Shown piece after piece: positions 7,770 through 35,645 of a stretch of DNA of 35,645 nt (within the stretch, counting starts at the first letter, position 1; the number at the start of each line of letters is the position of its first letter). Under the pieces are notes generated by a model that was not told the DNA's origin, searched no databases, and saw only the letters and a program-made list of their open reading frames with translations. The DNA lies in the NCBI GenBank assembly GCA_002269645.1, contig NIVC01001041.1, positions 28,521 through 64,165 on the forward strand, read 5' to 3'. The DNA is from Macrostomum lignano. Lineage: Eukaryota. The translations under genes and the position numbers were made by a program.

Positions 7770-9330
7770 ATGGCAACAGAGATGAAGCGGAAGCTGAGAG
7801 CGGCGCTGGAGGCTGGAGACAGCGAGGAGCTGCAGCGACTGTGCGGTGAGGTCGGCAGCAACATCGAGCTGGAGGTGGGCGGGTTCGACAAGCAAGACTA
7901 TCCCTTTGAAGAGCTTCACAAAATGCCGCTGGCCCAACACGTGGCTTGCAAGCCGGTGAGCTCGTCGTGCCTGGAGCTGCTGATTGACAGATTCGGAACC
8001 GGCTGTCTGACACGTGGAAATGGTAGAGGGCAGACTCCAGTGCACTTGGCTGCCCAGCATCAGGACGAATCTTGGATGGAGCTGGTTAAAGAGAAGGGAG
8101 GCAGAGGCTGCTTGAGAATTGCCGCTAAAAATGGAGAGACAGTCGCTCACTTTGCCGCTATGAACAGAAAAAGCAACTCTTGTCTGAAGTGGCTGGTGAA
8201 GGAGCTCGGCAGCGACTGTCTCACAGTTCCTGACGAAGACGGTACCACGGGCGTCCATTTGGCCGCTCAGCATCAGGGCATCGAGTCGCTGGAGTGGATC
8301 AAGAGACAGATCGGAACTGACTGCTTTCGGCTGAAGGGAGAATGTGATACAACAGCATTTCACTTTGCTGCTGTGAAGTCTGACAATTCAAATCTGAAGT
8401 GGCTGGTGAAAGAGCTCGCAGCGACTGTCTCACAGTTCCTTACAAATACGGGAACAAGGCCGTCCATTTGGCCGCTGAGCATCAGGGCATCGAGTCGCTG
8501 GAGTGGATCAAGAGACAGATCGGAACTGACTGCTTTCGGCTGAAGGGAGATGGTGATAGAACGGCATTTCACATTGCTGCTCAGAAGTCTGACAATTCAA
8601 TGCTGAAGTGGCTGGTGAAGGAGCTCGGCAGCGACTGTCTCACAGTTCCTGACTCTAGAGGTGACACGGCCGTCCATTTGGCCGCTCAGCATCAGAGCAT
8701 CGAGTCGCTGGAGTGGATCAAGAGACAGATCGGAACTGACTGCTTTCGGCTGAAGGGAGATGGTGATAGAACGGCATTTCACATTGCTGCTCAGAAGTCT
8801 GACAATTCAATGCTGAAGTGGCTGGTGAAGGAGCTCGGCAGCGACTGTCTCACAGTTCCTGACTCTAGAGGTGACACGGCCGTCCATTTGGCCGCTGAGC
8901 ATCAGAGCATCGAGTCGCTGGAGTGGATCAAGAGACAGATCGGAACTGACTGCTTTCGGCTGAAGGGAGATGATGATAGAACAGCATTTCACTTTGCTGC
9001 TAAGAAGTCTGACAATTCAAATCTGGAGTGGCTGGTGAAGGAGCTCGGCAGCGACTGTCTCACAGTTCCTGACTCTAGAGGTGACACGGCCGTCCATTTG
9101 GCCGCTCAGTGGCAGCCAGTCGACTCTCTTCAGTTCATTTTTGACCAAATCGGAGCCGAAATGCTCGGCTTGAAGAACAACGAGGGCAAAACACCGGCTG
9201 ATTATGTTGAGAGTTATTGCTACTTTAGAGACCAGTCAGCAAAGCGGGCCTGGATTTCCTCCACGCAGCGGCAGCTCGAAGCCTCTCGGCCTCCCGCTGG
9301 CAGCTCAGCGCCGACTGCCGCCTCAGCTGG
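7770..9330 (+). CDS. Ankyrin-repeat Ser/Thr kinase, exon 1 (ankyrin-repeat array; 1-bp frameshift at ~8418)
   Basis: ATG in GCCATGG context. Repeated GxTxxHxAA ankyrin motifs across ORFs 7770..8543 and 8399..9334, which join if one G is restored in CTCG(G)CAGC. Donor GG|GTGAGT at 9330/9331 (phase 2). Confidence 0.88.
8191..9110 (+). repeat. 210-bp coding tandem repeat (two 35-aa ankyrin repeats per unit), 4 full units plus a partial
   Basis: GGCTGGTGAA(G/A)GAGCTCG at 8191, 8401, 8610, 8820 and 9030. Confidence 0.95.
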
Positions 9331-9484
9331 GTGAGTCCTGACTGAGAGCTGCTGCCTGACACTGAAAATTCTGAAAATGTTTTTTGGCGAAAATTCATTG
9401 AAATTCATTGCTTTGATGATCGGCGCCCTGAAATTCTCAGCAGCGCCGCAGTCAAGCGAGGGTGTCATGAATCTGTCAGTACAG

Positions 9485-9720
9485 CTCCTCATGGCGCCCC
9501 CAACCTCTACATGGCGCCTCCAACCTCCCCATGGCGCCCCCAACCTCCCCATGGCGCCCCAACCTCCCCATGGCGCCTCCAACCTCCTCATGGCGCCTCC
9601 AACCTCCCCATGGCGCCCCCAACCTCCCCATGGCGCCTTAAACCTCTTCATGGCGCCTCCAACCTCCCAACGCGTCTCCAATCTCCCCATGGCGCCTCCA
9701 ACCTCCCTATGGGCCCACAA
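9485..9720. repeat. ~20-bp intronic minisatellite CCAACCTCCCCATGGCGCCT (intron 1)
   Basis: Direct reading. Confidence 0.92.
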
Positions 9721-10044
9721 CCCCCACCCACAGCTCAATCTGCAGTTTTTAAACACAAAGCATCAGCGAGTGCAAGTGCCATCAAACTCTCCGAAGTTTC
9801 AAACTCTCCGATTTTAGTAGGAATGTACTTGGTGTGATGTTCAAAATATTGGCACTTGAATGATTTGAGAGCCTCCAATCTCTTCGTGGCGCCGCAATCT
9901 CCCGATCGCGCCCCAATGTCCATATAGCGCCACCCAAAGCTCAATCTGCAGGGGCTTTTTATACACGAAGCATTAGCAGAGTTTAAGTGCCGTCTTGGCG
10001 ACCCAGACATTTTTAACGGCTCACTCGTAAAACTCTTCCTACAG

Positions 10045-10131
10045 CGCTGCAGCTCCGCGTCCCCGCCCACGAGCTCGACAGAGCGTCCAGCCGCCTGGGC
10101 CGACTCCGGTCGGACTGCCTGAAAAGACTCG
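10045..10131 (+). CDS. Ankyrin-repeat kinase, exon 2 (87-bp Pro/Arg-rich linker)
   Basis: Acceptor CTCTTCCTACAG|C and donor CG|GTGAGA. Phase 2-2, open (AAAPRPRPRARQSVQPPGPTPVGLPEKT), and in frame with exons 1 and 3. Confidence 0.65.
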
Positions 10132-10244
10132 GTGAGAAATGATGAGGCGACAGTTAGTGAACTCATCAGAACCTGCAGTCTGAGCGCAGGCAACCAGCCA
10201 AAAGGCACCTGGCTCTTCACGGCGCCCGAGGATGCTCATGACAA

Positions 10245-10986
10245 AAGGGTGGTGACGCAGAAGGGTGGTGACGCAGAAGGGTGGTGACGCAGAAGGGTGG
10301 TGACGCAGAAGGGTTGTGACGCAGAAGGGTGGTGACGCAGAAGGGTGGTGACGCAGAAGGGTGGTGACGCAGAAGGGTGGTGACGCAGAAGGGTGGTGAC
10401 GCAGAAGGGTGGTGACGCAGAAGGGTGGTGACGCAGAAGGGTTGTGACGCAGAAGGGTGGTGACGCAGAAGGGTGGTGACGCAGAAGGGTGGTGACGCAG
10501 AAGGGTGGTGACGCAGAAGGGTGGTGACGCAGAAGGGTGGTGACGCAGAAGGGTGGTGACGCAGAAGGGTGGTGCGCAGAAGGGTGGTGACGCAGAAGGG
10601 TGGTGACGCAGAAGGGTGGTGACGCAGAAGGGTGGTGACGCAGAAGGGTTGTGACGCAGAAGGGTGGTGACGCAGAAGGGTGGTGACGCAGAAGGGTGGT
10701 GACGCAGAAGGCTGGTGACGCAGAAGGTTGGTGACGCAGAAGGGTGGTGACGCAGAAGGGTGGTTGACGCAGAAGGCTGGTGACGCAGAAGGGTGGTGAC
10801 GCATAAGGATGGTGACGCATTAGAGTAGTGACGCAGAAGGGTGGTGACGCAGAAGGGTGGTGACGCAGAAGGGTGGTGACGCAGAAGGGTGGTGACGCAG
10901 AAGGGTGGTGACGCAGAAGGGTGGTGACGCAGAAGGGTGGTTGACGCAGAAGGCTGGTGACGCATAAGAGTAGTGACGCAGAAGGC
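10245..10986. repeat. 16-bp intronic minisatellite GGGTGGTGACGCAGAA, ~46 units (intron 2)
   Basis: Direct reading. Confidence 0.96.
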
Positions 10987-11058
10987 TGAGTGACTCCAAA
11001 GTACTCAGAAAGCCCCAAGCAACACAAAATTCATCAATTCCTTCATTTCATGTTTCAG

Positions 11059-11443
11059 CGCCAAGAAGCAGCTGGACCCCAGCTTCACCGACTGGGACTT
11101 CATTCTGCAGGACGACAAGAAGCAGCTCATCGGCCGTGGTGGATTCGGCAAGGTGTACAAGGCCCTCACAGACCGCAACCAGACGGTGGCTGTCAAGGTG
11201 CTGCCCCTGAGCGGCACCGGCCAATCGGGGAAGCTGCAGAGAGCCGTCGAGATGGAGAAGCGGGGAGTTGAGATCCTCAAGCGACTCTCGCATCCCAACA
11301 TCCTGCAGTTCCTCAAGTGCGAGCAGAAGTCGGATGGGCTGTACATCTTCACCGAGCTGGTCTCGGGTCACAGCCTCTTTGAGCTGATGCAGCGTCAAAA
11401 AAAGCCGTTCAAGGAGTCCGGGGTCAGGGACTTCTCCAGACAG
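11059..11443 (+). CDS. Ankyrin-repeat kinase, exon 3 (kinase N-lobe)
   Basis: Acceptor TTTCATGTTTCAG|C. Contains IGRGGFGKVY, VAVK, HPNILQFL and IFTELVSGHSL. Donor CAG|GTGCGT (phase 0). Confidence 0.92.
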
Positions 11444-11476
11444 GTGCGTGTCTGAGTTCTCTGGCATTGCCTGGCA

Positions 11477-11735
11477 TGGGTGGGATCAGTGTGGGATCAG
11501 TGTGGGATCAGTGTGGGATCAGTGTGGGATCAGTGTGGGATCAGTGTGGGATCAGTGTGGGATCAGTGTGGGATTAGTGTGGGTTCAGTGTGGGATCAGT
11601 GTGGGATCAGTGTGGGATCAGTGTGGGATCATTGTGGGTTCAGTGTGGGATCATTGTGGGATCAGTGTGGGATCATTGTGGGTTCAGTGTGGGATCAGTG
11701 TGGGATCAGTGTGGGATTAGTGTGGGATCAGTGTG
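11477..11735. repeat. 11-bp intronic minisatellite GGGATCAGTGT (intron 3)
   Basis: Direct reading. Confidence 0.95.
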
Positions 11736-11784
11736 GGTGGGAGCAGGTATGGGGTCTCATGACTGCTCAAAACTGCTCCTGCAG

Positions 11785-12270
11785 ATCTGCTCAGGCCTGA
11801 ACTTTCTGCACTGCCAGCCGGAGGGCGCTATCTTGCACCGTGACATTAAGAGCTCCAATATTATGCTCACCAACGAGGGCGTCATCAAGCTGATCGACTT
11901 CGGTCTGGCCAAGGAGATTGAGAAGACCTGCGGTCTTAGCACAGGCTTCGGACCAAAAGGTACCATGTACTTCATGGCTCCGGAGCTGTTCGACACAAAA
12001 TTGAAATCACTTCTGTACTCAGCCAAGACCGACGTGTGGGCCTTCGGCTGCACCGTGTATGAGCTGACGGCCATGCAGCCTCCTGATGGAGACCAGCCAA
12101 TTGAAAATATTGGCATTCTGCGGTTTAGAAAGCAGAAGATGCCTCGGATTGCGGACGGGTTCTCAGCCGGCCTGAAGGACTTCTACCTCAGGTGCGTAGA
12201 CTATGACCCGAGGAAGCGAGCGGACACCGCGGAGCTGCTGCGGCACAGCTTCCTGAGTGCCTCATCCTGA
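11785..12270 (+). CDS. Ankyrin-repeat kinase, exon 4 (kinase C-lobe, MAP3K/STE11-like)
   Basis: Acceptor CTCCTGCAG|ATC (phase 0). Contains [20 protein letters not shown] and [18 protein letters not shown]. Stop TGA ends at 12270. Confidence 0.93.
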
Positions 12271-14575: not shown

Positions 14576-16399
14576 TGTTAGACATGTCCTGTTAGACATG
14601 GGAGTCTCCTGTTAGACATGGGAGTCTCCTGTTAGACATGGGAGTCTCCTGTTAGACATGGGAGTCTCCTGTTAGACATGGGAGTCTCCTGTTAGACATG
14701 GGAGTCTCCTGTTAGACATGGAGTCTCCTGTTAGACATGGGAGTCTCCTGTTAGACATGGGAGTCTCCTGTTAGACATGGGAGTCTCCTGTTAGACATGG
14801 AGTCTCCTGTTAGACATGGGAGTCTCCTGTTAGACATGGGAGTCTCCTGTTAGACATGGGAGTCTCCTGTTAGACATGGAGTCTCCTGTTAGACATGGGA
14901 GTCTCCTGTTAGACATGGGAGTCTCCTGTTAGACATGGGAGTCTCCTGTTAGACATGGGAGTCTCCTGTTAGACATGGGAGTCTCCTGTTAGACATGGGA
15001 GTCTCCTGTTAGACATGGGAGTCTCCTGTTAGACATGGGAGTCTCCTGTTAGACATGGGAGTCTCCTGTTAGACATGGGAGTCTCCTGTTAGACATGGGA
15101 GTCTCCTGTTAGACATGGGAGTCTCCTGTTAGACATGGGAGTCTCCTGTTAGACATGGCAGTCTCCTGTTAGACATGGGAGTCTCCTGTTAGACATGGGA
15201 GTCTCCTGTTAGACATGGGAGTCTCCTGTTAGACATGGGAGTCTCCTGTTAGACATGGGAGTCTCCTGTTAGACATGGAGTCTCCTGTTAGACATGGGAG
15301 TCTCCTGTTAGACATGGGAGTCTCCTGTTAGACATGGGAGTCTCCTGTTAGACATGGGAGTCTCCTGTTAGACATGGGAGTCTCCTGTTAGACATGGGAG
15401 TCTCCTGTTAGACATGGGAGTCTCCTGTTAGACATGGGAGTCTCCTGTTAGACATGGGAGTCTCCTGTTAGACATGGAGTCTCCTGTTAGACATGGAGTC
15501 TCCTGTTAGACATGGGAGTCTCCTGTTAGACATGGGAGTCTCCTGTTAGACATGGGAGTCTCCTGTTAGACATGGGAGTCTCCTGTTAGACATGGGAGTC
15601 TCCTGTTAGACATGGGAGTCTCCTGTTAGACATGGGAGTCTCCTGTTAGACATGGGAGTCTCCTGTTAGACATGGGAGTCTCCTGTTAGACATGGGAGTC
15701 TCCTGTTAGACATGGGAGTCTCCTGTTAGACATGGGAGTCTCCTGTTAGACATGGCAGTCTCCTGTTAGACATGGGAGTCTCCTGTTAGACATGGGAGTC
15801 TCCTGTTAGACATGGGAGTCTCCTGTTAGACATGGGAGTCTCCTGTTAGACATGGGAGTCTCCTGTTAGACATGGGAGTCTCCTGTTAGACATGGGAGTC
15901 TCCTGTTAGACATGGGAGTCTCCTGTTAGACATGAGTCTCCTGTTAGACATGGGAGTCTCCTGTTAGACATGGGAGTCTCCTGTTAGACATGGGAGTCTC
16001 CTGTTAGACATGGGAGTCTCCTGTTAGACATGGGAGTCTCCTGTTAGACATGGGAGTCTCCTGTTAGACATGGGAGTCTCCTGTTAGACATGGGAGTCTC
16101 CTGTTAGACATGAGAGTCTCCTGTTAGACATGGGAGTCTCCTGTTAGACATGGGAGTCTCCTGTTAGACATGGGAGTCTCCTGTTAGACATGGGAGTCTC
16201 CTGTTAGACATGGGAGTCTCCTGTTAGACATGGGAGTCTCCTGTTAGACATGGGAGTCTCCTGTTAGACATGGGAGTCTCCTGTTAGACATGGGAGTCTC
16301 CTGTTAGACATGGGAGTCTCCTGTTAGACATGGGAGTCTCCTGTTAGACATGGGAGTCTCCTGTTAGACATGGGAGTCTCCTGTTAGACACGGGAATCT
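14576..16399. repeat. 20-bp minisatellite CTGTTAGACATGGGAGTCTC, ~90 units
   Basis: Direct reading. Highly homogeneous. Confidence 0.98.
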
Positions 16400-16725
16400 C
16401 CTGTTTGATATGACAGTCTTCTTTACTCTTCTCTCTACCCTCTCATATCCAGCAAAGTTATCATAATTTTCTAGTAGGCTGCATGCAGGCGTACATCGGA
16501 GAATTATTAATTCATGCATGTCATGTCGCTTTGTCCCCATCTTTGTGAGATTCTGGTGAAACTCGGGTGAGATTCTGGTGAGGGTAAGATCAGGGGAAAG
16601 GGCGTAGAATAGAAGGTAAAAGGGGTTCGTAGGCTTCATGCTATTGTTAATTTTGATCGTTGAATTCATGTACTGTTTATGACCGATTCTTCACAGCTAC
16701 CCTACATGTACGAGTTGTGATCATG

Positions 16726-20770: not shown

Positions 20771-20777
20771 TTTATTA

Positions 20778-22100
20778 GCCCCGGCCTCAGCCCCATTCCC
20801 AGCCCCAGTCCCAGCCTCAGTCCCAGCCCCATTCCCAGCCCCGGCCCCAGCCCCATTCCCAATCCCAGCCCCATTCCCAACCCCAGTCCAAGCCCCATTC
20901 CCAGCCCCAGTCCCAGCCCCATTCCCAGCCCCATTCCCAGCCCCAGTCCCAGCCCCATTCCCAGCCCCAGTCCAAGCCCCATTCCCAGCCCCATTCCCAG
21001 CCCCAGTCCCAGTCCCAGTCCAAGTCCCAGTCCCAGCCCCATTCCCAGTCCCATTCCCAGCCCCATTCCCAGCCCCAGTCCCAGCCCCAGTCCCAGTCCC
21101 AGTCCAAGTCCCAGTCCCAGCCCCATTCCCAGCCCCATTCCCAGCCCCAGTCCCAGTCCCAGTCCAAGTCCCAGTCCCAGCCCTATTCCCAGTCCCATTC
21201 CCAGCCCCATTCCCAGCCCCAGTCCCAGCCCCAGTCCAAGCCCCATTCCCAGTCCCATTCCCAGCCCCAGTCCCAGCCCCAGTCCAAGCCCCAGTCCCAG
21301 CCCCATTCCCAGCCCCATTTCCAGCCCAAGTCCAAGCCCCATTCCCAGCCCCATTCCCAGCCCCAGTCCCAGTCCCAGTCCAAGTCCCAGTCCAAGCCCC
21401 ATTCCCAGCCCCAGTCCAAGCCCCATTCCCAGCCCCAGTCCCAGTCCCAGTCGAAGTCCCAGTCCAAGCCCCATTCCCAGCCCCAGTCCAAGCCCCATTC
21501 CCAACCCCATTCCCAGCCCCAGTCCCAGTCCCAGTCGAAGTCCCAGTCCCAGCCCCATTCCCAGCCCCAGTCCCAGCCCCAGTCCAAGCCCCATTCCCAG
21601 TCCCATTCCCAGCCCTAGTCCCAGCCTCAGTCCAAGCCCCAGTCCCAGCCCCATTCCCAGCCCCATTTCCAGCCCCAGTCCAAGCCCCATTCCCAGCCCC
21701 ATTCCCAGCCCCAGTCCCAGTCCCAGTCCAAGTCCCAGTCCCAGCCCCATTCCCAGCCCCATTCCCAGTCCCAGTCTAAGTCCCAGTCCCAGCCCCATTC
21801 CCAGCCCCAGTCCCAGCCCCAGTCCAAGCCCCATTCCCAGTCCCATTCCTAGCCCTAGTCCCAGCCTCAGTCCAAGCCCCAGTCCCAGCCCCATTCCCAG
21901 CCCCATTTCCAGCCCCAGTCCAAGCCCCATTCCCAGCCCCATTCCCAGCCCCAGTCCCAGTCCCAGTCCAAGTCCCAGTCCCAGCCCCATTCCCAGCCCC
22001 ATTCCCAGTCCCAGTCTAAGTCCCAGTCCCAGTTCCAGTCCCAGCCCCATTCCTAGCCCCAGTCCCAGTCCAAGTCCCAGTCCCAGCCCCAGTCCCAGAC
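20778..22100. repeat. Hexamer-based array (CCCAGT/CCCAGC/CCCATT/CCAAGC) with higher-order blocks
   Basis: Direct reading. Gives the GL/GM and WD/WE dipeptide pseudo-ORFs. Confidence 0.97.
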
Positions 22101-24783
22101 CCAATGTGAGCCTGGAGCGAAGGGGACCAAAGCTAAGAAGTAGGCCCCAACGCTGCGGACGCTGCCTTTGTCTAAGGCACCCAACGTAGCTCGGCTCACA
22201 CAACCATCAGCAGCAGCATCAACGATGATGCACGACGGCCGGGTCCGATCCAGCCGTGTTCACATGGAACTGGCGTACAGGCGTTCATTTTTTCACTCAA
22301 GTAGTTGCTATTGCGTAGTTCTCTAACCTTCTTGCTATTGTGCAGGTTTCGAATAAAGCGACTGAGCACAAATATGAGCGCGGAAAAGAAGAGAAACTTT
22401 CAACTTGCGCCCGAACAATGGAGCCATTGCAGTTATAAGACTTGGTCTGCACATACTGAAAGTAAAAGGAGGTGCAGCGATCACCGCCCATTCCGACCCA
22501 CGAAAAACCGCCTATACATGCTGGTTGCCTGACTTTCCGGAGTCTGGACAAGCATTTCTTAGAAAACACCAGTTTTTCCAACCAAGAGGACATGAGCGGC
22601 AAAAGACAAGAGCTGGAGGATGACATGCGGCAGAGGCTGAGTTGCAGTGAAATGTATCGATTACTGTATTCATTAGTTTAAATTAAATTGTAAAATATTG
22701 AATTATGTAGACACATCGGTGCACATGCAGGCGATGTCAATTTCAACCGCTGTCTGGTTGCCTCGTCAGACGGAGTCCACGATGAAAACTCTGGACTGCG
22801 ATGTCTGCGAGGCAGTCATACAGTGTGAGAGAGCGGACTAGACAGCATCACGCAGGGCTAGTAGGGTGCTGGCGTCAACAGAACCGGATGTTTGAGACGT
22901 TGTGGCTCGGCTATAGGAATCAGCCTTGTCATGTGACACAGCAAACGACCTGTTGACTTGATCCCAGGTGCTGTCCGCTAAAATTAAGGCAAAAAGGCCT
23001 ACCAAATCCAGCCATGTGCACCGACTGATGGCATTAAAATTGCTCTATTCAGAAAAATTCAGTAAATAAACAAAAAAGAGTAAAGTTGAAAACTGTTTGC
23101 TTAATTAAAGTTGCTTGCTAGTGTTAGATAGTCACCTTAGAAGGCGAAGCATGCCAGCTCTTAGGGGAGTCAAGCATGCTGGTCAAGCGTAAGACAATGG
23201 TTACCCCTTTGAGAGTACCCCCGCAGGCGTCAGCAACCCGACACCACGGCTCTTGGGGGCGGAATCCGTTCGCCCTTGGGAAAAGCCACCTCGAGGTGAG
23301 GAGGCGGCAGACGGAGCAGCACTGCGGCGACCACGGAACGCCACTCTGCTATCTGAATGTTGGAACTCACTCGAGTTCGCGTCACGGCAGCGGCAGGAAG
23401 GTGGGTGCGACCCCCTTGTTGGCTGCAACTTTTGTGTCCGCTAGTGACAGACGGCTGGAGGAGAGACCGAGGGGCCGTAGGCGGCACAGGCATCCGGTAC
23501 CCCGGTAGGAGGGACCAGTGCGCGGGCCTGAGGAGTGAGCCGCCCTGTTTTGGGTGCAGTCTGTTGGGATGGCAAACCCGGCTGACTGGAGGTGAGGCAC
23601 TGGTGTGCAGGGACCGATGCAGTTGTTGCTCACTTTTCCCGCTCAAATAGTTTTGCTCAGCTCTGGGCAGGCACGCGGTCACCAAGTTTGGAGCTCGGTT
23701 GAGTAGATAAGCAGGCACGGAGTGCAGCGAGGACCAATAAGCCCTGCTGAAAATGGAGCAAGCAGCAGAGTTTAAAATATTTTCTACTGTACCATTGCTT
23801 ATCACTGCAACCAGCCGGAACCGCATTATCGCACCTCCAGCCATGGCTCAGCCTACTTGATACCTGCTGAATTTGCTTACCTGTGGGCCCACGCATCTTG
23901 TGAAGACTACTGATGTGCCCTGGAAACTACTGATTTCCCATGAATCTGTGACCCAGCAGAAGTCCAAAAAGCAATCCTTGAAATCCTATCGCATTGTCCG
24001 CATAGTGTACAGGTATGCTGATTAGTACAGTGATTTTAGTTGATATTGGTTCAGCTCCATTAAAAACCAACCCATTGTACCAGAGTGCCTAAGAAGTTGG
24101 CCTTCATGGCTGGGCTGGGAATCACCTCAGGCCAATCGCACAGAATCGAACCACAGTACATGTATAAATTTTTCGCAAGAGGCAGCTGCTCAGCCCCTCA
24201 ATTGCAGTCTCGGGCTTCATCAGTTGTTTATTATTAAAGTGCAGCCGAGCTCTGGCAGCCCATCTCAATTCTGTCCAGCTCTCGGCCGCAGCAACTCACT
24301 GCATTTTGCACTCCTGCCACCTGCAGCCAGCAGCAACAGACAGGCTTTGAGCCGCACTGAATGGCCTGAGAGCCATCAAATTCTGAGATTCGAGCATGGC
24401 AACAATGCCTTATTTATGACAAAACGCAGTCTTGAGTCGTAGAGAGCGGGTGGTTAGAGAGGCCAGCTCGACCTCAAGCAGTAATTAACTCTGCTCGCTC
24501 GCTATTCTCAGGCCAGCGCACCGCTCTGCCAGCCTCCCTGCAGTTTGGCAGACTCTGGGGGGCAACCTGATCTGTTTTGAGCAGTGAGCTGGGTGGAGTT
24601 GCGTTGTAGCTGGACTTGTTTGTCTCAGGCAGGGGTTGCGGGGGGGGGGTTGGGTGGTTCGGGAGGCCAGTATGGGGGGATTGCGAACTCGAGCAGTTTT
24701 CTCTTTGCCGGCCGCTTTTATCACGCCAGACTGTCGCACTGCGAGTGCTGAGCTGGGTGGGGCCGCTAACGATGAAGGTTGAA

Positions 24784-25236: not shown

Positions 25237-25288
25237 GGGTGTGTAAAAGGGAGATGGTTGGAGAAACACAATAGAGACAATCAGATGG

Positions 25289-27798
25289 TTATGGCACATG
25301 AGCAATGGCTGTGTGCATGAGATATGTGTCATGGCACATGAGCAATGGCTGTGTGCATGAGATAATGGCACATGAGCAATGGGTGTGCATGAGAAACATG
25401 AGCAAATGAGAGTCATGGCACATGAGCAATGGCTGTGTGCATGAGGTCATGGCACATGAGCAATGGCTGTGTGCATGAGATATGTCATGGCACATGAGCA
25501 ATGGCTGTGTGCATGAGATATGGCACATGAGCAATGGCTGTGTGCATGAGTGTCATGCACATGAGCAATGGCTGTGTGCATGAGATATTAGTCATGGCAC
25601 ATGAGCAATGGCTGTGTGCATGAGATATGGGTCATGGCACATGAGCAATGGCTGTGTGCATGAGATATGGGTCATAGCACATGAGCAATGGCTGTGTGCA
25701 TGAGATATGGGTCATGGCACATGAGCAATGGCTGTGTGCATGAGATATGGGTCATGGCACATGAGCAATGGCTGTGTGCATGAGATATGGGTCATAGCAC
25801 ATGAGCAATGGCTGTGTGCATGAGATATGGGTCATGGCACATGAGCAATGGCTGTGTGCATGAGATATGGGTCATGGCACATGAGCAATGGCTGTGTGCA
25901 TGAGATATGGTCATGGCACATGAGCAATGGCTGTGTGCATGAGATATGGTCATGGCACATGAGCAATGGCTGTGTGCATGAGATATGGGTCATGGCACAT
26001 GAGCAATGGCTGTGTGCATGAGATATGGGTCATGGCACATGAGCAATGGCTGTGTGCATGAGATATGGGTCATGGCACATGAGCAATGGCTGTGTGCATG
26101 AGATATGGGTCATGGCACATGAGCAATGGCTGTGTGCATGAGATATTAGTCATGGCACATGAGCAATGGCTGTGTGCATGAGATATGGGTCATGGCACAT
26201 GAGCAATGGCTGTGTGCATGAGATATGGTGTCATGGCACATGAGCAATGGCTGTGTGCATGAGATATGTGTCATTGCACATGAGCAATGGCTGTGTGCAT
26301 GAGATATGGGTCATGGCACATGAGCAATGGCTGTGTGCATGAGATATGGTCATGGCACATGAGCAATGGCTGTGTGCATGAGATATGTGTCATGGCACAT
26401 GAGCAATGGCTGTGTGCATGAGATATAGTCATGGCACATGAGCAATGGCTGTGTGCATGAGATATGGGTCATGCACATGAGCAATGGCTGTGTGCATGAG
26501 ATATGGGTCATGGCACATGAGCAATGGCTGTGTGCATGAGATATGGGTCATGGCACATGAGCAATGGCTGTGTGCATGAGATATGGTCATGGCACATGAG
26601 CAATGGCTGTGTGCATGAGATATGTGTCATTGCACATGAGCAATGGCTGTGTGCATGAGATATGGGTCATTGCACATGAGCAATGGCTGTGTGCATGAGA
26701 TATGTGTCATGCACATGAGCAATGGCTGTGTGCATGAGATATGGGTCATGGCACATGAGCAATGGCTGTGTGCATGAGATATGTGTCATTGCACATGAGC
26801 AATGGCTGTGTGCATGAGATATGGGTCATTGCACATGAGCAATGGCTGTGTGCATGAGATATGGGTCATTGCACATGAGCAATGGCTGTGTGCATGAGAT
26901 ATGGGTCATTGCACATGAGCAATGGCTGTGTGCATGAGATATGGGTCATTGCACATGAGCAATGGCTGTGTGCATGAGATATGGGTCATTGCACATGAGC
27001 AATGGCTGTGTGCATGAGATATGGGTCATTGCACATGAGCAATGGCTGTGTGCATGAGATATGTGTCATTGCACATGAGCAATGGCTGTGTGCATGAGAT
27101 ATGGGTCATTGCACATGAGCAATGGCTGTGTGCATGAGATATGTGTCATTGCACATGAGCAATGGCTGTGTGCATGAGATATGGGTCATTGCACATGAGC
27201 AATGGCTGTGTGCATGAGATATGGGTCATTGCACATGAGCAATGGCTGTGTGCATGAGATATGGGTCATTGCACATGAGCAATGGCTGTGTGCATGAGAT
27301 ATGGGTCATTGCACATGAGCAATGGCTGTGTGCATGAGATATGTGTCATTGCACATGAGCAATGGCTGTGTGCATGAGATATGGTCATTGCACATGAGCA
27401 ATGGCTGTGTGCATGAGATATGGGTCATTGCACATGAGAAATGACTGTGTGCATGAGATATGGGTCATGGCACATGAGCAATGGCTGTGTGCATGAGATA
27501 TGTGTCATTGCACATGAGCAATGGCTGTGTGCATGAGATATGGGTCATTGCACATGAGCAATGGCTGTGTGCATGAGATATGGGTCATGGCACATGAGCA
27601 ATGGCTGTGTGCATGAGATATGGTCATTGCACATGAGCAATGGCTGTGTGCATGAGATATGTGTCATTGCACATGAGCAATGGCTGTGTGCATGAGATAT
27701 GGGTCATTGCACATGAGCAATGGCTGTGTGCATGAGATATGGGTCATTGCACATGAGAAATGACTGTGTGCATGAGATATTAGTCATGGCACATGAGC
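25289..27798. repeat. 40-bp minisatellite GTCATGGCACATGAGCAATGGCTGTGTGCATGAGATATGG, ~60 units
   Basis: Direct reading. Confidence 0.98.
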
Positions 27799-28175: not shown

Positions 28176-28886
28176 TTTTATCGCCACTAAAAATCTGCGC
28201 ATCGGCAACAAAATCTGATTGGCTGTTGCTTTTGGACTTCTTGGAGGCAAAAATATAAAGAAGTGTGGAACATCAGTGGGCCAAAGCGAGGGTGGATTGC
28301 TGAATTCTGTCAGTTGATATGCGTGCTCATGTAGCTGGCGAAGAGAGCCCTGTGAGCAGGACTGCTCAAGCTCGCAGCTAAACAAAACTCGAGCTGAGCG
28401 AGCATTTGTTATAAAATGCAATCAGCTGCTTGAGAAGCCAGTTTTTTTACAAGCCAAATGCGGACAATGAAATCGATGGAGAGGCGGACTCGAATGTGCA
28501 ATAAAATTGAATTCTTACAGGTGCGCAACAAAACACAAGCTGACCCACCCCCGAGAGCCGAGGCACGACTCACGGCAGTGTAAGAGTTTTGTCATTCGCT
28601 TTTGAGTAAAAAACTCCAGCATAGCGAATCTTCAGGTGCCAACGAGTTTCTGGAAAAATTCCATGCAGCCTTCTTCTCTTTAACAACAAATGGTATTCTT
28701 ATGAGTACTATGAGTAGCGTATTGTAAGCGATATTGTTTGCGGAGATTTAAAACTATTTTTTAACTGAACGACTATATATCCACGAGGGCCAAGAAGTGA
28801 TGCAAGTTATGAAGTGATGAAGTGATTAGATTGATGGCAGCTGTTTGTTCGCGATTTTGAAGGTATTTTGGAAGGTATTTTGCCAG
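28176..28886. mobile_element. Dispersed repeat head, copy B (longer 5' part than copy A)
   Basis: 5' part resembles 18633 onward and 3' part resembles 545-885. Confidence 0.5.
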
Positions 28887-30075
28887 CCCTGCCTCTCACC
28901 CTACATCTCAGCCTGTCTCTCTCCCTGCCCCTCACCCTACATCCCAGCCTGTCTCTCTCCCTGCCCCTCACCCTACATCCCAGCCTTTCTCTCTCCCTGC
29001 CCCTCACCCTACATCCCAGCCTTTCTCTCTCCCTGCTCCTCACCCTACATCCCAGCCTGTCTCTCTCCCTGCCCCTCACCCTACATCCCAGCCTGTCTCT
29101 CTCCCTGCCCCTCACCCTACATCCCAGCCTGTCTCTCTCCCTGCCCTCACCCTACATCCCAGCCTGTCTCTCTCCCTGCCCCTCACCCTACATCCCAGCC
29201 TGTCTCTCTCCCTGCCCCTCACCCTACATCCCAGCCTGTCTCTCTCCTTGCTTCTCACCCTACATCCCAGCCTTTCTCTCTCCCTGCCCCTCACCCTACA
29301 TCCCAGCCTTTCTCTCTCCCTGCCCCTCACCCTACATCCCAGCCTGTCTCTCTCCCTGCCCCTCACCCTACATCCCAGCTTCTCCCTGCCCCTCACCCTA
29401 CATCCCAGCCTTTCTCCCTCCCTGCTTCTCACCCTACATCCCAGCCTATCTCTTCTTGTCCCTCACCCTACATCCCAGCCTGTCTCTCTCCCTGCCCCTC
29501 ACCCTACATCCCAGCCTGTCTCTCTCCCTGCCCCTCACCCTACATCCCAGCCTGTCTCTCTCCCTGCCCCTCACCCTACATCCCAGCCTGTCTCCCTCCC
29601 TGCTTCTCACCCTACATCCCAGCCTTTCTCTCTCCCTGCCCCTCACCCTACATCCCAGCCTTTCTCTCTCCCTGCCCCTCACCCTACATCCCAGCCTGTC
29701 TCTCTCCCTGCCCCTCACCCTACATCCCAGCCTGTCTCTCTCCCTGCCCCTCACCCTACATCCCAGCCTGTCTCTCTCCCTGCCCCTCACCCTACATCCC
29801 AGCCTGTCTCTCTCCCTGCCCCTCACCCTACATCCCAGCCTGTCTCTCTCCCTGCCCCTCACCCTACATCCCAGCCTGTCTCTCTCCCTGCCCCTCACCC
29901 TACATCCCAGCCTTTCTCTCTCCGTGCCCCTCACCCTACATCCCAGCCTGTCTCTCTCCCTGCCCCTCACCCTACATCCCAGCCTTTCTCTCCCTGCCCC
30001 TCACCCTACATCCGAGCCTGTCTCTCCCTGCCCCTCACCCTACATCCCAGCCTGTCTCTCCCTGCCCCTCTCCCT
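28887..30075. repeat. 36-bp minisatellite, ~33 units (duplicate of 886-1844)
   Basis: Direct reading. Shares terminal variant units (CCGTGCCCC, TCCGAGCC) with array 1. Confidence 0.97.
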
Positions 30076-30598
30076 AATTCTAAACGCCCAATATGAGTGG
30101 GAGGCTCGCATCTGAAAACACGAAGTGCCGAATATCAAAGGCAGTAAATTTTTGCTGAGAGCACAAGCGCAATGCAAAGCAGTGAATTGTTTGAGCGGGG
30201 CAGGGTTAGCGCTCACGCATCTTGTCTCTGTGCCGCTTTTAGGCAGCCATCAACCCCCCCCCCTCCTAAAAAAGCATTTGCAGCGAGTCTTCTTTTGACA
30301 CGCGTTCGCAGGCTGCCGGCTCGGCCCTTAAACCTCAGCTTCGCCATTGTCCTCTAGGCATTGAGCTCGGCTGGTCTGGAGCTGCTTGGATGGCTAGGGT
30401 CGGGGCGAGTAGAAGCAGGGTCAGTCTGTTGCACCGGATAAATAAATCCAAAGATTATCAAAGGTGGATTACAAAATGCACACCTGAACTGTGTATAAAG
30501 ATTAGCAAAATAAACCGTGAGTACAAAATGCAAAATTATTAATAAATTTATAAATAAACTGCATTTGAGCACAAAGCGCCATTGATGAGGTGCCACAG

Positions 30599-31034
30599 CA
30601 GGGTGAAGTGAAGGCAGCAAAGTCAGACACAAATTCATGCAGACTGCAGTCAAGCGAGCCATATTCAGTACTTGCAGTAGCACAGCAGGGTGAAGTGAAG
30701 GCAGCAAAGTCAGACACAAATTCATGCAGACTGCAGTCAAGCGAGCCATATTCAGTACTTGCAGTAGCACAGCTGGGTAAAGTGAAGGCAGCAAAGTCAG
30801 ACACAAATTCATGCAGACTGCAGTCAAGCGAGCCATATTCAGTACTTGCAGTAGCACAGCAGGGTGAAGTGAAGGCAGCAAAGTCAGACACAAATTCATG
30901 CAGATTGCAGTCAAGCGAGCCATATTCAGTACTTGCAGTAGCACAGCTGGGTGAAGTGAAGGCAGCAAAGTCAGACACAAATTCATGCAGATTGCAGTCA
31001 AGCGAGCCATATTCAGTACTTGCAGTAGCACAGC
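30599..31034. repeat. 87-bp tandem repeat, 5 units (duplicate of 2369-2715)
   Basis: Direct reading. Confidence 0.95.
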
Positions 31035-34000
31035 TGGCTGCACCGAGCTTTTCAATATCCAGGAACCGTTAAGAGTTCTGTGGCTTTTTTCGATAGTCCG
31101 ACGCTGTACCACTGTGCTACAACAGTATGCACACTGTGGGCATTTTGAGATGGCCAGCCAGCCCTGGGCCTTGAACCTCAAATTAATGTAACGGCACGCC
31201 GAATCCAAACACAGGTATTTTAAAGTCTACCATAACTTCAAACCCGCAGGCAGTCATGTACCGGCAACCAATACCATCAACGGTCCCTGCCTGAGCTGCT
31301 CCCACGGCTGGGGCCGCTGTTTCGGCCGCGCCATCTGCTGTCACCCCCACGGCGGATATCGCGTCGGCTTCGGCCCGGACACCGCCGCGTGTCGCCGTCT
31401 GCCAGCGAAAGTCCTTGGCTGCGGTCGCGTCGCCACCGTCTGTCTGGGAGGCAAGGGTCGCTGCGCTTCCAGAGGCATCTGCTGCACTGCTGGTAAGAAG
31501 CTGTTCCTTCTCTACCAAATAGAAAGTTTCAAATAAAATATTTCACAATCCAGATATCTTTACTGACATTTTTTTCTATTTTAGATTCTTGCGAAACAAT
31601 CAACGAGTGCAAAGACGTCAAGTTTGAAGTCAAGCGTTGATGCGAGACTTTCCAAATGTTTGACATAATATCTACATGCTAAAAAACATTAACTATTTTC
31701 GCGTAAGCTTGCTTTAATTCCCCAATTAGCCCATACAAAATAATAGCTTCTCTATGCGGATGTTAGCGGATATTGTGTTACATGAAATATTTACCCAATC
31801 AAATATACCACAGTAGCCCGTAGTCAAGCTACTAGGACACCCTGGCTGTATAGTTTAAAGTCTCAGCAGTCCTCTAAACCAAGCAATTAAAAAATAGCAA
31901 TTTTAATGGATCATTTCTTTGATCAGGTAATTTTTTCAAAGCATCAATCCAAGGAAATTGAATCCAACTTTCAAATTCGTGCACAAATTGTGCGTGTCGT
32001 GGAAATTAAATTTCACTAAATTTAAATCAGAAAATCAAGTATCATGACTGTCAAGTGACGAATTAATTATTGATTAGTTAAGTGGCGCGATATTTTTCGT
32101 CGACTGGGCACTAACGCGCGGTCTCTCCAGTGGCCAGTCACCCGTTAGATACTGATGTCACCTGTTAGATACTGGTGTCACCTTTTAGATACTGGTGTCT
32201 TCTGTTAGATACTGGTGTCACCCGTTAGATACCGATGTCACCCGTTAGATACCGATGTCACCCGTTAGATACCGATGTCACCCGTTAGATACCGATGTCA
32301 CCTGTTAGATACCGATGTCACCCGTTAGATACTGATGTCACTTGTTAGATACTATACTAGATCCTATATTATTACTATATTAGATGTAGTAACTCACACG
32401 GACTCCACTGGTTAAGTAAGTAAGAACTTCTTGAGAAAACTTGAGCGACTGCTAGTTAGCGCACGCGCATATATATTTAATAAGCAAGACGTACATTAGT
32501 ACACGATACACGTACACGCGAGGACGAGCAATCAATGAGGTGTATTTACGAGCTACTTAAGCAATAATCAACGTGCCCACGCAACCCTACACCCCAAGCA
32601 ACCTCAGATCAGTCCAGTGGCACTTTGCCACAGATGTCACCTGTTAGATACTGGTGTAACCTGTTAGATACTGGTGTAACCTGTTAGATACTGGTGTAAC
32701 CTGTTAGATATTGGTGTCAAATGTTAGATACCGAGGTCACCTGTTAGATACTGATGTCACCTGTTAGATACTGACTAGCAATCTTCGCCCCCCGATGGGG
32801 GGCATCTAGATAGAATCTCTAGCTCTCTACAAGTATCAAAAAGACGGCCAAATAAAGCCTTCACATAGACAATAGAAAAACTGCTCAAATGAAGTGCAAT
32901 GCAAAAAGAAAACATCCCAGGACAGCAAGCAACCCCCAGATAGCAAGCACCCCCAGATAGCAAGCATCTCCAGATAGCAGGCACCCCAGATAGCAAGCAT
33001 CCACCTAATAGCAAGCACCCCCAGATAGCAAGCACTCCAAGATAGCAGGCACCCCAGATAGCAAGCATCCACCTAATAGCAAGCACCCCCAGATAGCTAG
33101 AACCCCTTACGAGCTACTTAAGCAATAATCAACGTGCCCACGCAACCCTACACCCCAAGCAACCTCAGATCAGTCCAGTGGCACTTTGCCACAGATGTCA
33201 CCTGTTAGATACTGGTGTAACCTGTTAGATACTGGTGTAACCTGTTAGATATTGGTGTCACCTGTTAGATACCCAGGTCACCTGTTAGATACTGATGTCA
33301 CCTGTTAGATATTGATGTCACGTGTTAGATATTGATGTCACCTGTGAGATACTGATGTCACTTGTTAGATACTGATGTCACCTGTTAGATACTGATGTCA
33401 CCTGTTAGATACTGACTAGCAATCTTCGCCCCCCGATGGGGGGCATCTAGATAGAATCTCTAGCTCTCTACAAGTATCAAAAAGACGGCCAAATAAAGCC
33501 TTCACATAGACAATAGAAAAACTGCTCAAATGAAGTGTAATGCAAAAAGAAAACATCCCAGGACAGCAAGCAACCCCCCAGATAGCAAGCACCCCCAGAT
33601 AGCAAGCATCTCCAGATAGCAGGCACCCCAGATAGCAAGCATCCACCTAATAGCAAGCACCCCCAGATAGCAAGCACCCCCAGATAGCAAGCATCCCCCC
33701 CAGATAGCAAGCACCCCAGATAGCAGCATCTCCAGATAGCAAGCACTCCAAGATAGCAGGCACCCCAGATAGCAAGCATCCACCTAATAGCAAGCACCCC
33801 AGATAGCAAGCACTCCAAGATAGTAGGCACCCCATTTATGTTTGACATGGTAGCTGTTTTGTGTTTGACATGGTGGCTCTTTAATGTTTGACCTGGTGGC
33901 ATCTTAATGTCTGTAATGATGGCTCTTTAATGTTCGACATGGTGCTCTTTTATGTTCGACATGGTGGCTCTTTAATGTTTGACATGGTGGCTCTTTTATG

Positions 34001-34432
34001 TTTGACATGGTGGCTTTTTAATGTTTGACCTGGTGGCATCTTAATGTCTGCAATGATGGCTCTTTAATGTCTGACATGGAGTCACTTATACGCTTGACAT
34101 GGTGACTCGTTGATGTTTGACATAGTGGCTCTTTTATGTTCGACATGGTGGCTCTTTAATGTTTGACCTGGTGGCACCTTAATGTCTGTAATGATGGCTT
34201 CTTAATGTTCACCATGGTGGCTCTTTAATGTTCGACATGATGGCTCTTTAATGTTCGACATGGTGGCTCTTTAATGTTTGACATGGTGGCTCTTTAATGT
34301 TAGACATGGAGTCACATATATGTTTGACATGGTGGCCTTTAATGTTTGAAATGGTGCCACTTTTGTTTGACATTGTGCTTCTTTTATGCTTAGCATTTTG
34401 TTTTTAAGATGTTTTAATAAAAAAATTATTTT

Positions 34433-34503
34433 GCACTACTTAGATTCGAACCCAGGTCGCTGAATTAGCAGTCCAGTCTGTTCGCATCTATGCTATCTCT
34501 TGT
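34433..34503 (-). pseudogene. tRNA-derived element, duplicate of 6140-6210
   Basis: Identical sequence within the duplicated segment. Confidence 0.6.
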
Positions 34504-35645
34504 CGATTGGAGAACATGAATTGTGGCCCTTATAATTCATTCTTATAGCAAATCGGTTAGAGTAAAAAGTTATGACATAATCAATTTCTCAGTCAGCCAG
34601 TATCAGTCTCAATTTAAGTTAGCAATATGGTTACGCAATTTAAATCAAGTCGTGTGTGCATTTCTTTGGCACTGTTTTCAACTTGCTGTGATGCAATCTT
34701 TATCAGAATTGAAATTCAGTCAGTCAGGTTTTTCTCTAGCATTTTTACAATGCATTTCAGGTCGAAAGAGCTGCTTGACCTTTGCAGAAAATCAGTTTTT
34801 TCGAATATTTAATTCCTTTAATATTGATCAATTTCTTAGCCAAGATGCATGCACCATCCCAGGAAAATTTCTGATCGAATGGTGCAAGTTTGAAGAGAAT
34901 CGGTTGAGCCATTCTCGAAAAAATCAATTACACGCACGCACGATACTGATGTCACCTGTTAGATACTGATGTCACCTGTTAGATAATGGTGTCACGTGTT
35001 TGATACCGATATCGCCTGTTAGATACTGATGTCACTTGTATGATACTGATGTCACCTGTTAGATACTGATGTCACCTGTTAGATAATGGTGTCACGTGTT
35101 TGATACCGATATCGCCTGTTAGATACTGATGTCACTTGTATGATACTGATGTCACCTGTTAGATACTGACGTCACCTGTTAGATACTGACGTCACCTGTT
35201 AGATAAAGAAGTCACGTATTAGATACTGATGTCAGCTGTGAGACACTTATGTCACCTGTTAGATATCGATGTCACCTGTTAGATACTGATGTCACCTTTT
35301 TGATACTGATGTCACCTGTTAGATACTGATGTCACCTGTTAGATACTGGTGTCACCTGTTAGATACTGACGTCACCTGTTAGATACTAGAGTGACATGTT
35401 AGACACTGATGTCACCTGTTAGATACTGACGTCACCTGTTAGATACTGACTTAAAGTGTCGCTGGCAAACCCAAGCGACCATTCTCCATCTGTTTCGAGT
35501 TCAGCAACAAAAAATCCTCAGTTATAAGCATTTTTCTGCAAAATTTTTGCCATACAATTGCAAACTGAATTGAAAATCGTCAGAGAGCTCCGCTTGGTTT
35601 CCAGGCCTCAGCCCTGCCCTCCCTCCCCCCTCCATCTCTCTCCCC

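Follow-up and report, generated by a model that had tools for sequence, protein, structure and literature searches.

Fungal NLRs (HET-E, HET-D and the NWD family) carry ANK, TPR or WD repeats that are highly conserved internally, and a kinase is among the effector domains listed for them (Dyrka et al. 2014, PMC4986451). The gene that we describe here, BOX15_Mlig034536g1 of the flatworm Macrostomum lignano (7770..12270, + strand, within a window of 35,645 bp, the whole stretch of DNA analyzed, which is identical to positions 28521-64165 of scaffold NIVC01001041.1), belongs to a family that resembles these proteins in several ways: its repeats are at least 85% identical to one another, come in variable numbers, and are reshuffled both inside single paralogs and among them; its hypervariable sites lie in the β-hairpin loop and inner helix, on the ankyrin concave face; and its effector domains are swapped as modules. 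Unlike the fungal genes, it comes from an animal and has its effector at the C terminus, joined directly to the repeats. The original prediction had placed the gene alongside HET-E and the NLRs, and this comparison holds as an analogy of evolutionary mode but not as membership: the gene is not an NLR, since Pfam found no NACHT/NB-ARC NTPase domain in its product.

RNase L combines an ankyrin sensor with a pseudokinase and a KEN ribonuclease; its activating ligand binds to the ankyrin repeats, which also drive dimerisation. In the PDB, it gave the closest match to the architecture as a whole, with a likeness that is one of domain order (an N-terminal ankyrin array, then a kinase fold) and not of geometry, given a TM of only 0.27–0.33. 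The M. lignano gene differs from it in lacking the KEN RNase domain, in having intact kinase motifs, unlike those of a pseudokinase, and in its homogenised, hypervariable repeats. Ankyrin repeats and a kinase also share one chain in TNNI3K and ILK (ANK then kinase) and in RIPK4 and ANKK1 (kinase then ANK, for RIPK4 the reverse of the order seen here), but these distant matches (25–30% identity) are conserved, single-copy genes of the TKL group with repeats that are not homogenised. When aligned to canonical GxTxLHLAA repeats and DARPins, the M. lignano repeats shared with DARPins a fixed framework with diversity at positions 2, 3, 5, and 13, all four of them among the six that are randomised in DARPin libraries. 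They differ from DARPins in being natural and germline-encoded, in consisting of 35-aa repeats of two alternating types (A and B), in varying at position 10 as well, and, in the main subfamily, in conserving position 14 and the last residue. ANK-caspases have been described as specific to parasitic flatworms, in an account that does not report repeat hypervariability and that mentions a kinase-like pro-domain in an M. lignano caspase (PMC11463336). In our data, an array of this type precedes a caspase domain in the sister genes P0029 and P0127, where the window gene has a kinase instead.

The encoded protein runs from 13 ankyrin repeats through a flexible, disordered linker to a kinase of the STE type (Table 1). 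Both the gene limits and the order of array before kinase had been called correctly; Pfam identified ankyrin repeats and a Pkinase domain (E 7e-56), and all catalytic motifs are present. The AF2 model (mean pLDDT 85.9) contains 13 helix pairs at residues 54–506, where pLDDT is ~90 or more. Because neither a signal peptide nor a membrane or hydrophobic segment was found in the protein sequence, the protein is predicted to be cytoplasmic. From its start codon, exon 1 encodes three single-copy N-terminal ankyrin repeats, four homogenised double-repeat units (70 aa, 210 bp), a terminal repeat with C-cap, and the start of the linker, and it ends at a GG/GTGAGT donor site at 9331. The 87-nt cassette exon, flanked by the splice sites ctacag/C and CG/gtgaga, is present in P0002, P0004, P0005, P0008, P0009, P0265, and P0266 and is skipped in P0001 and P0003; it had been overlooked in the original prediction, as had the frameshift after 8418. 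Given that the gene models derive from RNA-seq, it is unlikely that the gene is untranscribed.

Table 1. Features of the ankyrin-kinase gene and of the duplicated segment in the window.
Feature	Position	Strand	Basis or content
Upstream segment	546..7352	+	Self-BLAST: direct repeat of 28548-35645, ~99.3% identity over longest block
Exon 1	7770..9330	+	ORFs and gene model; boundaries match annotated P0005 and P0265
Homogenised 210-bp tandem array	8184..9109	+	TRF: 4.4 copies, 93% matches
Frameshift, 1-bp deletion	8418..8419	+	One G of a GG pair lost in framework segment 'KELGSDC', immediately 5' of unit 2
Intron, first part	9331..10044	+	Contains 20-bp minisatellite, 9485-9722
Cassette exon, 87 nt, frame-preserving	10045..10131	+	Encodes Pro/Arg-rich linker AAAPRPRPRARQSVQPPGPTPVGLPEKTR (29 aa)
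Intron, second part	10132..11058	+	16-bp minisatellite, 47 copies, 10245-10994
Kinase N-lobe exon	11059..11443	+	GRGGFG glycine loop and VAVK lysine
Intron	11444..11784	+	11-bp minisatellite, 23.5 copies, 11480-11737
Kinase C-lobe exon	11785..12270	+	Carries 11-residue stretch and APE; stop codon at end
Upstream segment, second direct copy	28548..35645	+	Ends at scaffold end, just before expected start of a further gene copy

The kinase domain is ~30% identical to ASK1/MAP3K5 and to the STE20 family (STK25, SLK, MST3/4), with which it shares the STE-type motif 'GTxYFMAPE'. Both ASK1 and the STE20 kinases matched at E ~1e-34, and the structural comparison with ASK1 gave a TM of 0.82–0.85 at 30% identity. 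No orthology is evident, as STE20 and STE11 members score alike, and the domain context of these kinases differs from that of the M. lignano gene. The label "MAP3K-like" is accordingly apt insofar as ASK1/MAP3K5 is among the nearest relatives, but STE20 kinases fit equally well. Among paralogs, pN/pS was 0.36 for the N-lobe exon and 0.45 for the C-lobe exon, and the kinase, with its motifs intact, is under purifying selection. The family comprises roughly 30–40 annotated M. lignano proteins. All of the 32 best matches to the protein came from this species, the nearest ones outside it were kinases at only about 30% identity, and no ankyrin-region relative above 40% identity was present outside M. 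lignano among the matches checked (HMMER, 1.84 billion representatives); so far, the family has been seen only in M. lignano.

Within the array of this gene copy, TRF recovered the same 210-bp period that had been read from the letters, with units starting at 8232, 8441, 8651, and 8861 in protein register. The description of these units in the original prediction proved accurate in detail: the identical stretch of units 1 and 2, given as ~70 bp, measures 73 bp and codes for the peptide quoted there; the count of codons that differ between these units (13 non-synonymous, 3 synonymous) is exact; the variants DEDGTTG / YKYGNKA / DSRGDTA, ECDT / DGDR / DDDR, and FAAV / IAAQ / FAAK are all found; and the second repeat of unit 4 is a mosaic that joins the 'GD.DR' loop of units 2/3 to the 'FHFAA...NSNL' helix of unit 1. 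The clustering of the differences was confirmed with binding positions that were set beforehand (positions 2, 3, 5, 13, 14, and the last residue of each repeat; 12 of 70 columns), of which 8 of 12 vary in the window alone, versus 7 of the 58 other columns (Fisher p = 2e-4). The hypervariable codons are at positions 1–5 and 13 of the A repeat and at positions 1–5, 10, 13, and 19 of the B repeat, as determined from the unit alignment and per-codon pN/pS.

The same sites stand out across paralogs. In a dataset of 41 distinct units from 10 loci, change was concentrated at repeat positions 2, 3, and 5 in the loop and 10 and 13 in the inner helix, which approach saturation with amino-acid changes and where pN was 0.3–0.67 (0.58 at A2, 0.67 at A3, 0.31 at A5, and 0.37 at A13; 0.66 at B2, 0.62 at B3, and 0.34 at B13), compared to a framework pN that was mostly <0.07 and a global pS of 0.076. 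Half of the minimal non-synonymous changes (54 of 108) fell within the 12 of 70 preset codons (binomial p = 5e-15), and the ratio of non-synonymous to synonymous counts was 93:10 in seven core codons versus 96:44 elsewhere (Fisher p = 4.5e-5). Among the single-copy repeats at the N terminus, most codons with pN of at least 0.3 belonged to the loop patches that precede TPVHLAA, TVAHFAA, and MPLAHHVA; one further such codon (column 85) sat immediately upstream, in the repeat before. For repeats of fixed position, random 12-codon sets did not match the observed pN in any of 20,000 draws. The units, the flanking single-copy repeats, and a second subfamily with the same variable positions all bear out the proposed placement of the variation at canonical ankyrin binding positions.

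The framework, for its part, was near-identical even at synonymous sites, with a pS of 0.028 within genes and 0.058 between genes, compared to a flanking pS of about 0.11 (0.09–0.16 in flanking exons). Homogenisation and re-shuffling of the repeats, as had been suggested, are apparent from unit numbers that range from 2 to 13 per array across paralogs and from exchange both within and between genes. The 41 units contain 25 A-loop and 22 B-loop variants in many combinations; the loop DSRGD alone combines with 7 distinct B cassettes (each defined by its loop and by positions 10 and 13) across 5 loci, if the window and sister copy L001 are taken as a single locus. Recombination must have occurred at least 8 times inside the 210-bp unit. 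The P0266 and window proteins share a block of ~185 aa that is 100% identical amid otherwise differing sequence, and, in the second subfamily, the kinase gene P0017 and the caspase gene P0029 have identical units in common. The gene also lies in a duplicating segment, as predicted: its upstream segment recurs as a direct repeat, and a second, near-identical gene copy lies on the same scaffold beyond an N gap, in opposite orientation. As the M. lignano assembly is redundant (180 Mb in duplicated blocks), some of the "paralogs" may be alleles or homeologs, and some unit counts could be assembly errors since homogenised arrays are hard to assemble.

The array might have arisen as a neutral by-product, with repeat instability and conversion unifying the framework while diverged loop residues escape conversion and remain unconstrained, without any recognition function. 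Ankyrin repeats as a class are least conserved at positions 2, 3, 5, and 13, a property that underlies DARPin design, and part of the pattern is therefore expected from relaxed constraint. Synonymous divergence is also raised in or near the variable patches (pS of 0.66 at A1, GAC/GAT, and 0.56 at B2). The predicted dN/dS above 1 is in fact obtained only relative to background dS; against the codons' own pS, omega was 1.9 for 14 codons, 2.8 for the 7 core codons, and 1.2 for the single-copy repeats, and a SLAC-like within-codon test was not significant (pooled p = 0.12). Yet multiple hits inflate local pS at saturated codons, core-site pN is 3–9 times the background and flanking pS, and every repeat and the second subfamily vary at the same positions. 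The terminal repeat, whose position is fixed, has a pN of 0.40 versus a local pS of 0.10 at positions 2, 3, 5, and 13, while ORFs stay intact up to 13 units and the kinase is under purifying selection. A neutral origin is, on these data, unlikely. We are equally doubtful that the paralogs are scaffold kinases which each serve a different self protein instead of sensing non-self, for example partners from the fast-evolving pathways of reproduction or sexual conflict in this hermaphrodite. Endogenous partners are indeed bound by other ANK-kinase proteins, among them ILK and TNNI3K; the distant matches include TNNI3K and RIPK4, and the data hold no tie of the family to infection. Reproduction-related genes are reported to evolve rapidly in Macrostomum (PMC7336406). 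With fixed endogenous partners, however, it would be unusual for repeat number to vary, for cassettes to be shuffled, and for binding residues to be close to saturated; the family was found only in M. lignano, and a caspase joined to an array of this type points to an output in death or defence.

A pseudogene or an assembly artefact, and as such no guide to a working gene, is a very improbable reading of the window copy. The window does read GAGCTCGCAGC at 8418 where L001 reads GAGCTCGGCAGC, which leaves unit 2 at 209 bp and puts ORFs 7770–8543 and 8399–9334 in different frames; the NCBI model of the gene, P0265, is 5'-truncated and begins only at 8600, shortly past the frameshift; and the N gap, the inverted sister copy across it, and the redundancy of the assembly fit an artefact as well. 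Over 1250 bp, however, the only differences between the window and the intact sister copy are single-G deletions at 7549 and 8418, with zero substitutions, the C-lobe exon (exon 3) is 100% identical between the two, and there is no other lesion. Exon-1 ORFs are intact in 10 of 10 other loci, with 39 units in total. With a near-identical copy intact on the same scaffold, the frameshift is most likely a consensus error of the PacBio-based assembly rather than a sign of gene death.

We favor, with moderate confidence, the reading that the array has been diversified and selected as a variable binding groove, a sensor coupled to kinase signaling, which makes the ankyrin-kinase a strong candidate for a variable intracellular recognition receptor. 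In the germline, the array would be diversified as units of the same or of different paralogs undergo unequal crossing-over and gene conversion, and selection would favor new residues on the concave binding face, so that each paralog or allele would present a different groove. A protein ligand that occupies the groove would then probably switch on the kinase, whether by drawing several molecules into contact or through relief of autoinhibition, with downstream signaling probably through a MAPK-type cascade. By analogy with the fungal receptors, a role in immunity or allorecognition, in response to non-self or conflict, is plausible. That sister genes couple such an array to a caspase suggests a modular design of variable sensor and effector, as in non-self or conflict sensing, and the pattern recurs in 10 intact loci, whatever the status of the window copy.

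Codon differences among the ankyrin units of the window gene, BOX15_Mlig034536g1, were concentrated at a small set of positions. The original prediction had started from an array of 210-bp units (70 aa, a double ankyrin repeat, with A and B denoting its first and second repeat), and this observation was confirmed: TRF returned a period of 210 bp with 4.4 copies and 93% matches (8184-9109), the identical stretch of units 1 and 2, estimated at about 70 bp, proved to be a 73-bp run, and the count of 13 non-synonymous and 3 synonymous codon differences between these units was exact. The claimed clustering at binding positions was likewise found in the window alone, where 8 of 12 preset columns varied vs 7 of the 58 others (p = 2e-4). 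The interpretation placed on it, a variable recognition receptor, was supported in part.

We then evaluated the variation per codon across 41 distinct 210-bp units, fixing the repeat numbering by alignment to canonical repeats (GxTxLHLAA) and mapping the variable sites through the AF2 secondary structure together with that alignment. At a global pS of 0.076, non-synonymous divergence was highest at a core of seven codons (pN of 0.58 at A2, 0.67 at A3, 0.31 at A5, 0.37 at A13, 0.66 at B2, 0.62 at B3, and 0.34 at B13), with smaller peaks at B1, B4, B5, B10, and B19, and was below 0.07 for most framework codons. Of the 108 minimal non-synonymous changes, 54 fell in 12 of the 70 codons, a preset group (p = 5e-15). 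In the AF2 model, the loop preceding helix 1 contains positions 1-5, and the helix itself carries positions 10 and 13; the ankyrin binding face is made up of these positions. DARPin libraries randomise six positions, including 2, 3, 5, and 13. Repeats at fixed positions varied at the same places as the units. The terminal repeat displayed a pN of 0.40 vs a pS of 0.10 at positions 2, 3, 5, and 13, and the three N-terminal single-copy repeats (overall pS 0.118) reached a pN of at least 0.3 mainly in loop patches. The observed pN was not attained by any of 20,000 random 12-codon sets. A second subfamily (proteins P0017 and P0029) has its own homogenised unit, variable at A3, A5, A13, A14, B2, B3, B5, B10, and B13. 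We also observed a common synonymous GAC/GAT polymorphism at A1 in the 41 units (pS 0.66), adjoining the hypervariable codons. Such a pattern would follow if the loop cassettes predate the homogenised framework or are swapped en bloc.

We regard diversifying selection at the variable sites as likely rather than proven. With background or flanking pS as the reference, core-site omega was ~3-9, a comparison that assumes constant dS, as does codeml M8. Measured against the codons' own pS, it was 1.9 for 14 codons, 2.8 for the 7 core codons, and 1.2 for the single-copy repeats; we take these lower values neither as proof nor as a refutation, since saturated codons inflate the local pS through multiple hits. 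A SLAC-like test, built on NJ trees and Fitch ancestral codons, was not significant, either overall or at any single site, and had too little power, the expected non-synonymous fraction at the tested codons being already 0.82-0.88.

The framework surrounding these sites was strongly homogenised. Its pS amounted to 0.028 when units of one gene were compared and to 0.058 across genes, whereas the exons flanking the array in these genes had 0.09-0.16, and framework pN within genes was 0.017; the 93% matches extended over 926 bp, against a threshold for internal repeat conservation of at least 85% identity over at least 100 aa. At the variable codons, pN was similar within a gene (0.31) and between genes (0.335). 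Among the 41 units there were 39 combinations of 25 A-loop with 22 B-loop pentapeptides, with the DSRGD loop alone paired with seven B cassettes over five loci (the window and its sister copy being taken as a single locus), and at least eight recombination events were needed inside the 210-bp unit. P0266 (BOX15_Mlig009808g1) is a mosaic: A block of ~185 aa, from unit 4 across the C-cap to the linker cassette, was 100% identical to the window protein, while the N-terminus, the first units, and the kinase C-lobe were of another paralog type, and identical units were common to P0017, which carries a kinase, and P0029, which carries a caspase. Unit number ranged from 2 to 13 among paralogs and was 4.4 vs 3.4 in two near-identical copies on one scaffold; assembly errors may account for some of these counts.

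The window gene comprises four exons, including a cassette, with GT-AG splice sites throughout, and yields a protein of 810 aa when the cassette is omitted.

Features of the window, the window gene, and its 810-aa protein (P0005 and P0265 are annotated M. lignano family proteins, the latter that of the window gene)
Feature	Position	Basis or score
Exon 1	7770-9330	Boundaries agree with annotated P0005 and P0265
Cassette exon, 87 nt	10045-10131	Boundaries agree with P0005 and P0265
Exon	11059-11443	Boundaries agree with P0005 and P0265
Exon	11785-12270	Boundaries agree with P0005 and P0265
Tandem repeats (examples)	10245-10994, 11480-11737, 14587-16405, 20777-22103, 25287-27799	
Ankyrin repeats	~residues 54-506 of 810	
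Linker, low-confidence in the AF2 model	residues 507-524	
Pkinase domain	residues 541-806	Pfam E 7e-56

The window is eukaryotic and identical to NIVC01001041.1 28521-64165 of the Mlig_3_7 assembly (GCA_002269645.1), where it extends from directly after an N gap to the scaffold end; an (AG)n tract (1-496) adjoins the gap. Tandem repeats make up 55% of it, and we used self-BLAST in place of the general repeat search, whose output was dominated by minisatellites. Minisatellites occupy every intron of the gene (20-bp, 16-bp x47, and 11-bp x23.5), and tandem arrays of up to 111 copies flank it. Between 22 and 25 kb, where the sequence is non-repetitive, the ORFs gave no convincing gene. A bacterial promoter/terminator scan of the window returned nothing, and bacterial models do not apply to a eukaryote.

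Exon 1 contains one irregularity that the original prediction had overlooked: Unit 2 is 209 bp long, with one G lost after 8418, so that the exon lies in two frames, and the NCBI model (P0265) starts at 8600 because of it. The sister copy BOX15_Mlig008815g1 (locus L001), located on the same scaffold beyond the gap and in opposite orientation, has the GG intact. Over 1250 bp the two copies differed by two single-G length differences and zero substitutions, and exon 3 was 100% identical. An origin of the copies in separate assemblies was ruled out, as both lie on NIVC01001041.1. Mlig_3_7 is a Canu assembly of PacBio reads with Pilon polishing and SSPACE scaffolding, and is known to be redundant. 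Given this provenance and redundancy, and a near-identical copy with the GG intact, the frameshift is probably a consensus error of the assembly. The window copy holds four full units and the sister copy three, of which the third combines window units 3 and 4 through a crossover. The UniProt model P0007 contains 'GTRPSIWPLSIRASSRWS', an out-of-frame translation that the window ORF likewise gives after the frameshift (8419-8543); frameshifts, whether real or assembly-made, thus recur in the arrays of M. lignano gene sets.

Among the matches checked, close relatives of the gene came from this worm only. The best 32 protein matches were all from M. lignano, followed by generic kinases at ~30% identity, and an exhaustive HMMER search of the ankyrin region against 1.84 billion cluster representatives yielded, among the matches checked, relatives above 40% identity in M. 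lignano only. Exon-1 reading frames were intact in all of nine further loci, which hold 2 to 13 70-aa units each. The longest array, in paralog BOX15_Mlig011736g1 (locus L005, 10001-13459), has 13 units in an intact exon-1 ORF of 1153 aa; its annotated protein P0004 has only 835 aa, and transcript-based models therefore collapse these arrays. Its units follow a higher-order pattern in which DSRGD, DKYGT, and DILGD recur and unit 3 equals unit 7. The family is partly clustered, as P0006 is a fused model that joins the kinase end of one gene to the N-terminus of the gene after it, P0001 and P0003 share a contig, as do P0002 and P0004 (each pair ~50-70 kb apart), and an ANK-only relative adjoins P0002. 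The window protein itself has no signal peptide or membrane segment (maximum 19-residue hydropathy 0.98). P0011 (L009:3001) has an N-terminal extension, MGNTRSVAK, that conforms to the N-myristoylation consensus MGxxxS, a hint that one member of the family may be anchored to a membrane.

Both domains could be assigned. Ankyrin repeats as a class are tandem helix-turn-helix repeats of ~33 residues with a GxTxLHxAA core that stack into a solenoid. The window array matched Ank_2 (E 2.7e-40) as well as Ank, Ank_3, Ank_4, and Ank_5 (Pfam clan CL0465), could be aligned to NOMPC, ankyrin, espin, and DARPins, and was modeled by AF2 as 13 helix pairs with pLDDT ~90. The kinase has a complete catalytic motif set (Gly loop, VAIK Lys, HRD, DFG, and APE, the last as FMAPE), covers Pkinase profile positions 3-263 of 263, and evolves under purifying selection (pN/pS 0.36-0.45). 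It belongs to the STE group by sequence and structure relatives: Its top PDB sequence matches were STK25, SLK, MST3/4, and ASK1 (E 2e-34 to 3e-33), and Foldseek aligned ASK1/MAP3K5 with a TM of 0.82-0.85, making STE20 kinases and ASK1 the nearest solved relatives. The description "MAP3K-like" is thus fair for similarity (E ~1e-34) and for nothing beyond it, as STE20 and MAP3K members scored equally and an identity of only ~30% is too low to claim orthology to any named MAP3K. Within the C-lobe (11785-12270), three short stretches, one after DFG, one after APE, and a third one, differed sharply between the window type and other paralogs in an otherwise conserved region, which suggests divergent regulation or substrates among paralogs.

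Several known classes share part of this architecture. Among fungal NLRs, those whose ANK, TPR, or WD repeats are highly conserved internally evolve in a matching mode, and concave-face positive selection, repeat-number polymorphism, and effector swapping have been described in them (PMC4986451). The HET-E likeness that had been proposed holds for this mode and fails for class membership: NACHT and NB-ARC gave no significant Pfam score in the 810-aa protein or in 8 + 9 relatives, and the absence of the NTPase domain led us to reject an NLR of the HET-E/NWD type. RNase L was the closest whole-architecture PDB match when the whole model was searched with Foldseek, a likeness of domain order only (TM ~0.3); the window protein lacks the KEN ribonuclease that follows the pseudokinase in RNase L, and ends four residues past the kinase. 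Domain order also matches TNNI3K and ILK (TKL), but identity to TNNI3K reaches only 25% (E 2e-25) and the best kinase relatives are STE. Orthology to TNNI3K, ILK, or RIPK4 was rejected, close relatives occurring in M. lignano alone among the matches checked.

Platyhelminth ANK-caspases were rejected as a class for the window gene, which has no caspase (Peptidase_C14) domain. Such a domain is present in the sister genes P0029 (E 7e-16) and P0127 (E 1.3e-24), joined to this family's ankyrin arrays. These are ANK-caspases in a free-living flatworm, unlike their description as unique to parasitic platyhelminths (PMC11463336). The same work described flatworm ANK-caspases and, in M. lignano, a caspase whose pro-domain is kinase-like, and did not mention repeat hypervariability. 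Our literature search, which included six family gene identifiers, returned no paper describing this flatworm family.

The window family is thus a candidate diversifying repeat sensor, of a kind already known and in an animal form that is new. In the mechanism we propose, the hypervariable residues would line a single groove of the 13-repeat solenoid, and ligand binding in this groove would switch on the kinase, which is tethered through a flexible linker that varies in length. This might occur via induced proximity or release of autoinhibition, by analogy with RNase L and ASK1, and the caspase-for-kinase sister genes would fit a variable sensor with an exchangeable effector. It is possible, if on the doubtful side, that M. 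lignano holds a germline repertoire of intracellular receptors, undescribed in animals and resembling a natural DARPin library, in which homogenised ankyrin units are continually reshuffled, selected at binding residues, and wired directly to a kinase or caspase without an NLR-type NTPase, for innate recognition of pathogens, viruses, and other non-self. RNAi is usable in M. lignano. Together with the established transgenesis method (PMC5730564), this makes the receptor idea directly testable.

In fungi, homogenised arrays that are hypervariable at their binding sites are regarded as a hallmark of non-self receptors, and a survey found such repeats to be rare in metazoan ANK, TPR, and WD proteins (0.8%; Dyrka et al., PMC4986451). 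The arrays may also be a source of natural binder scaffolds. If the receptor reading is true, an animal would have evolved a variable intracellular recognition repertoire without the NLR core, its sensor joined directly to a kinase or caspase, and this would bear on how infection is sensed by flatworms, in which key parts of extrinsic apoptosis are reported to have been lost (PMC11463336).
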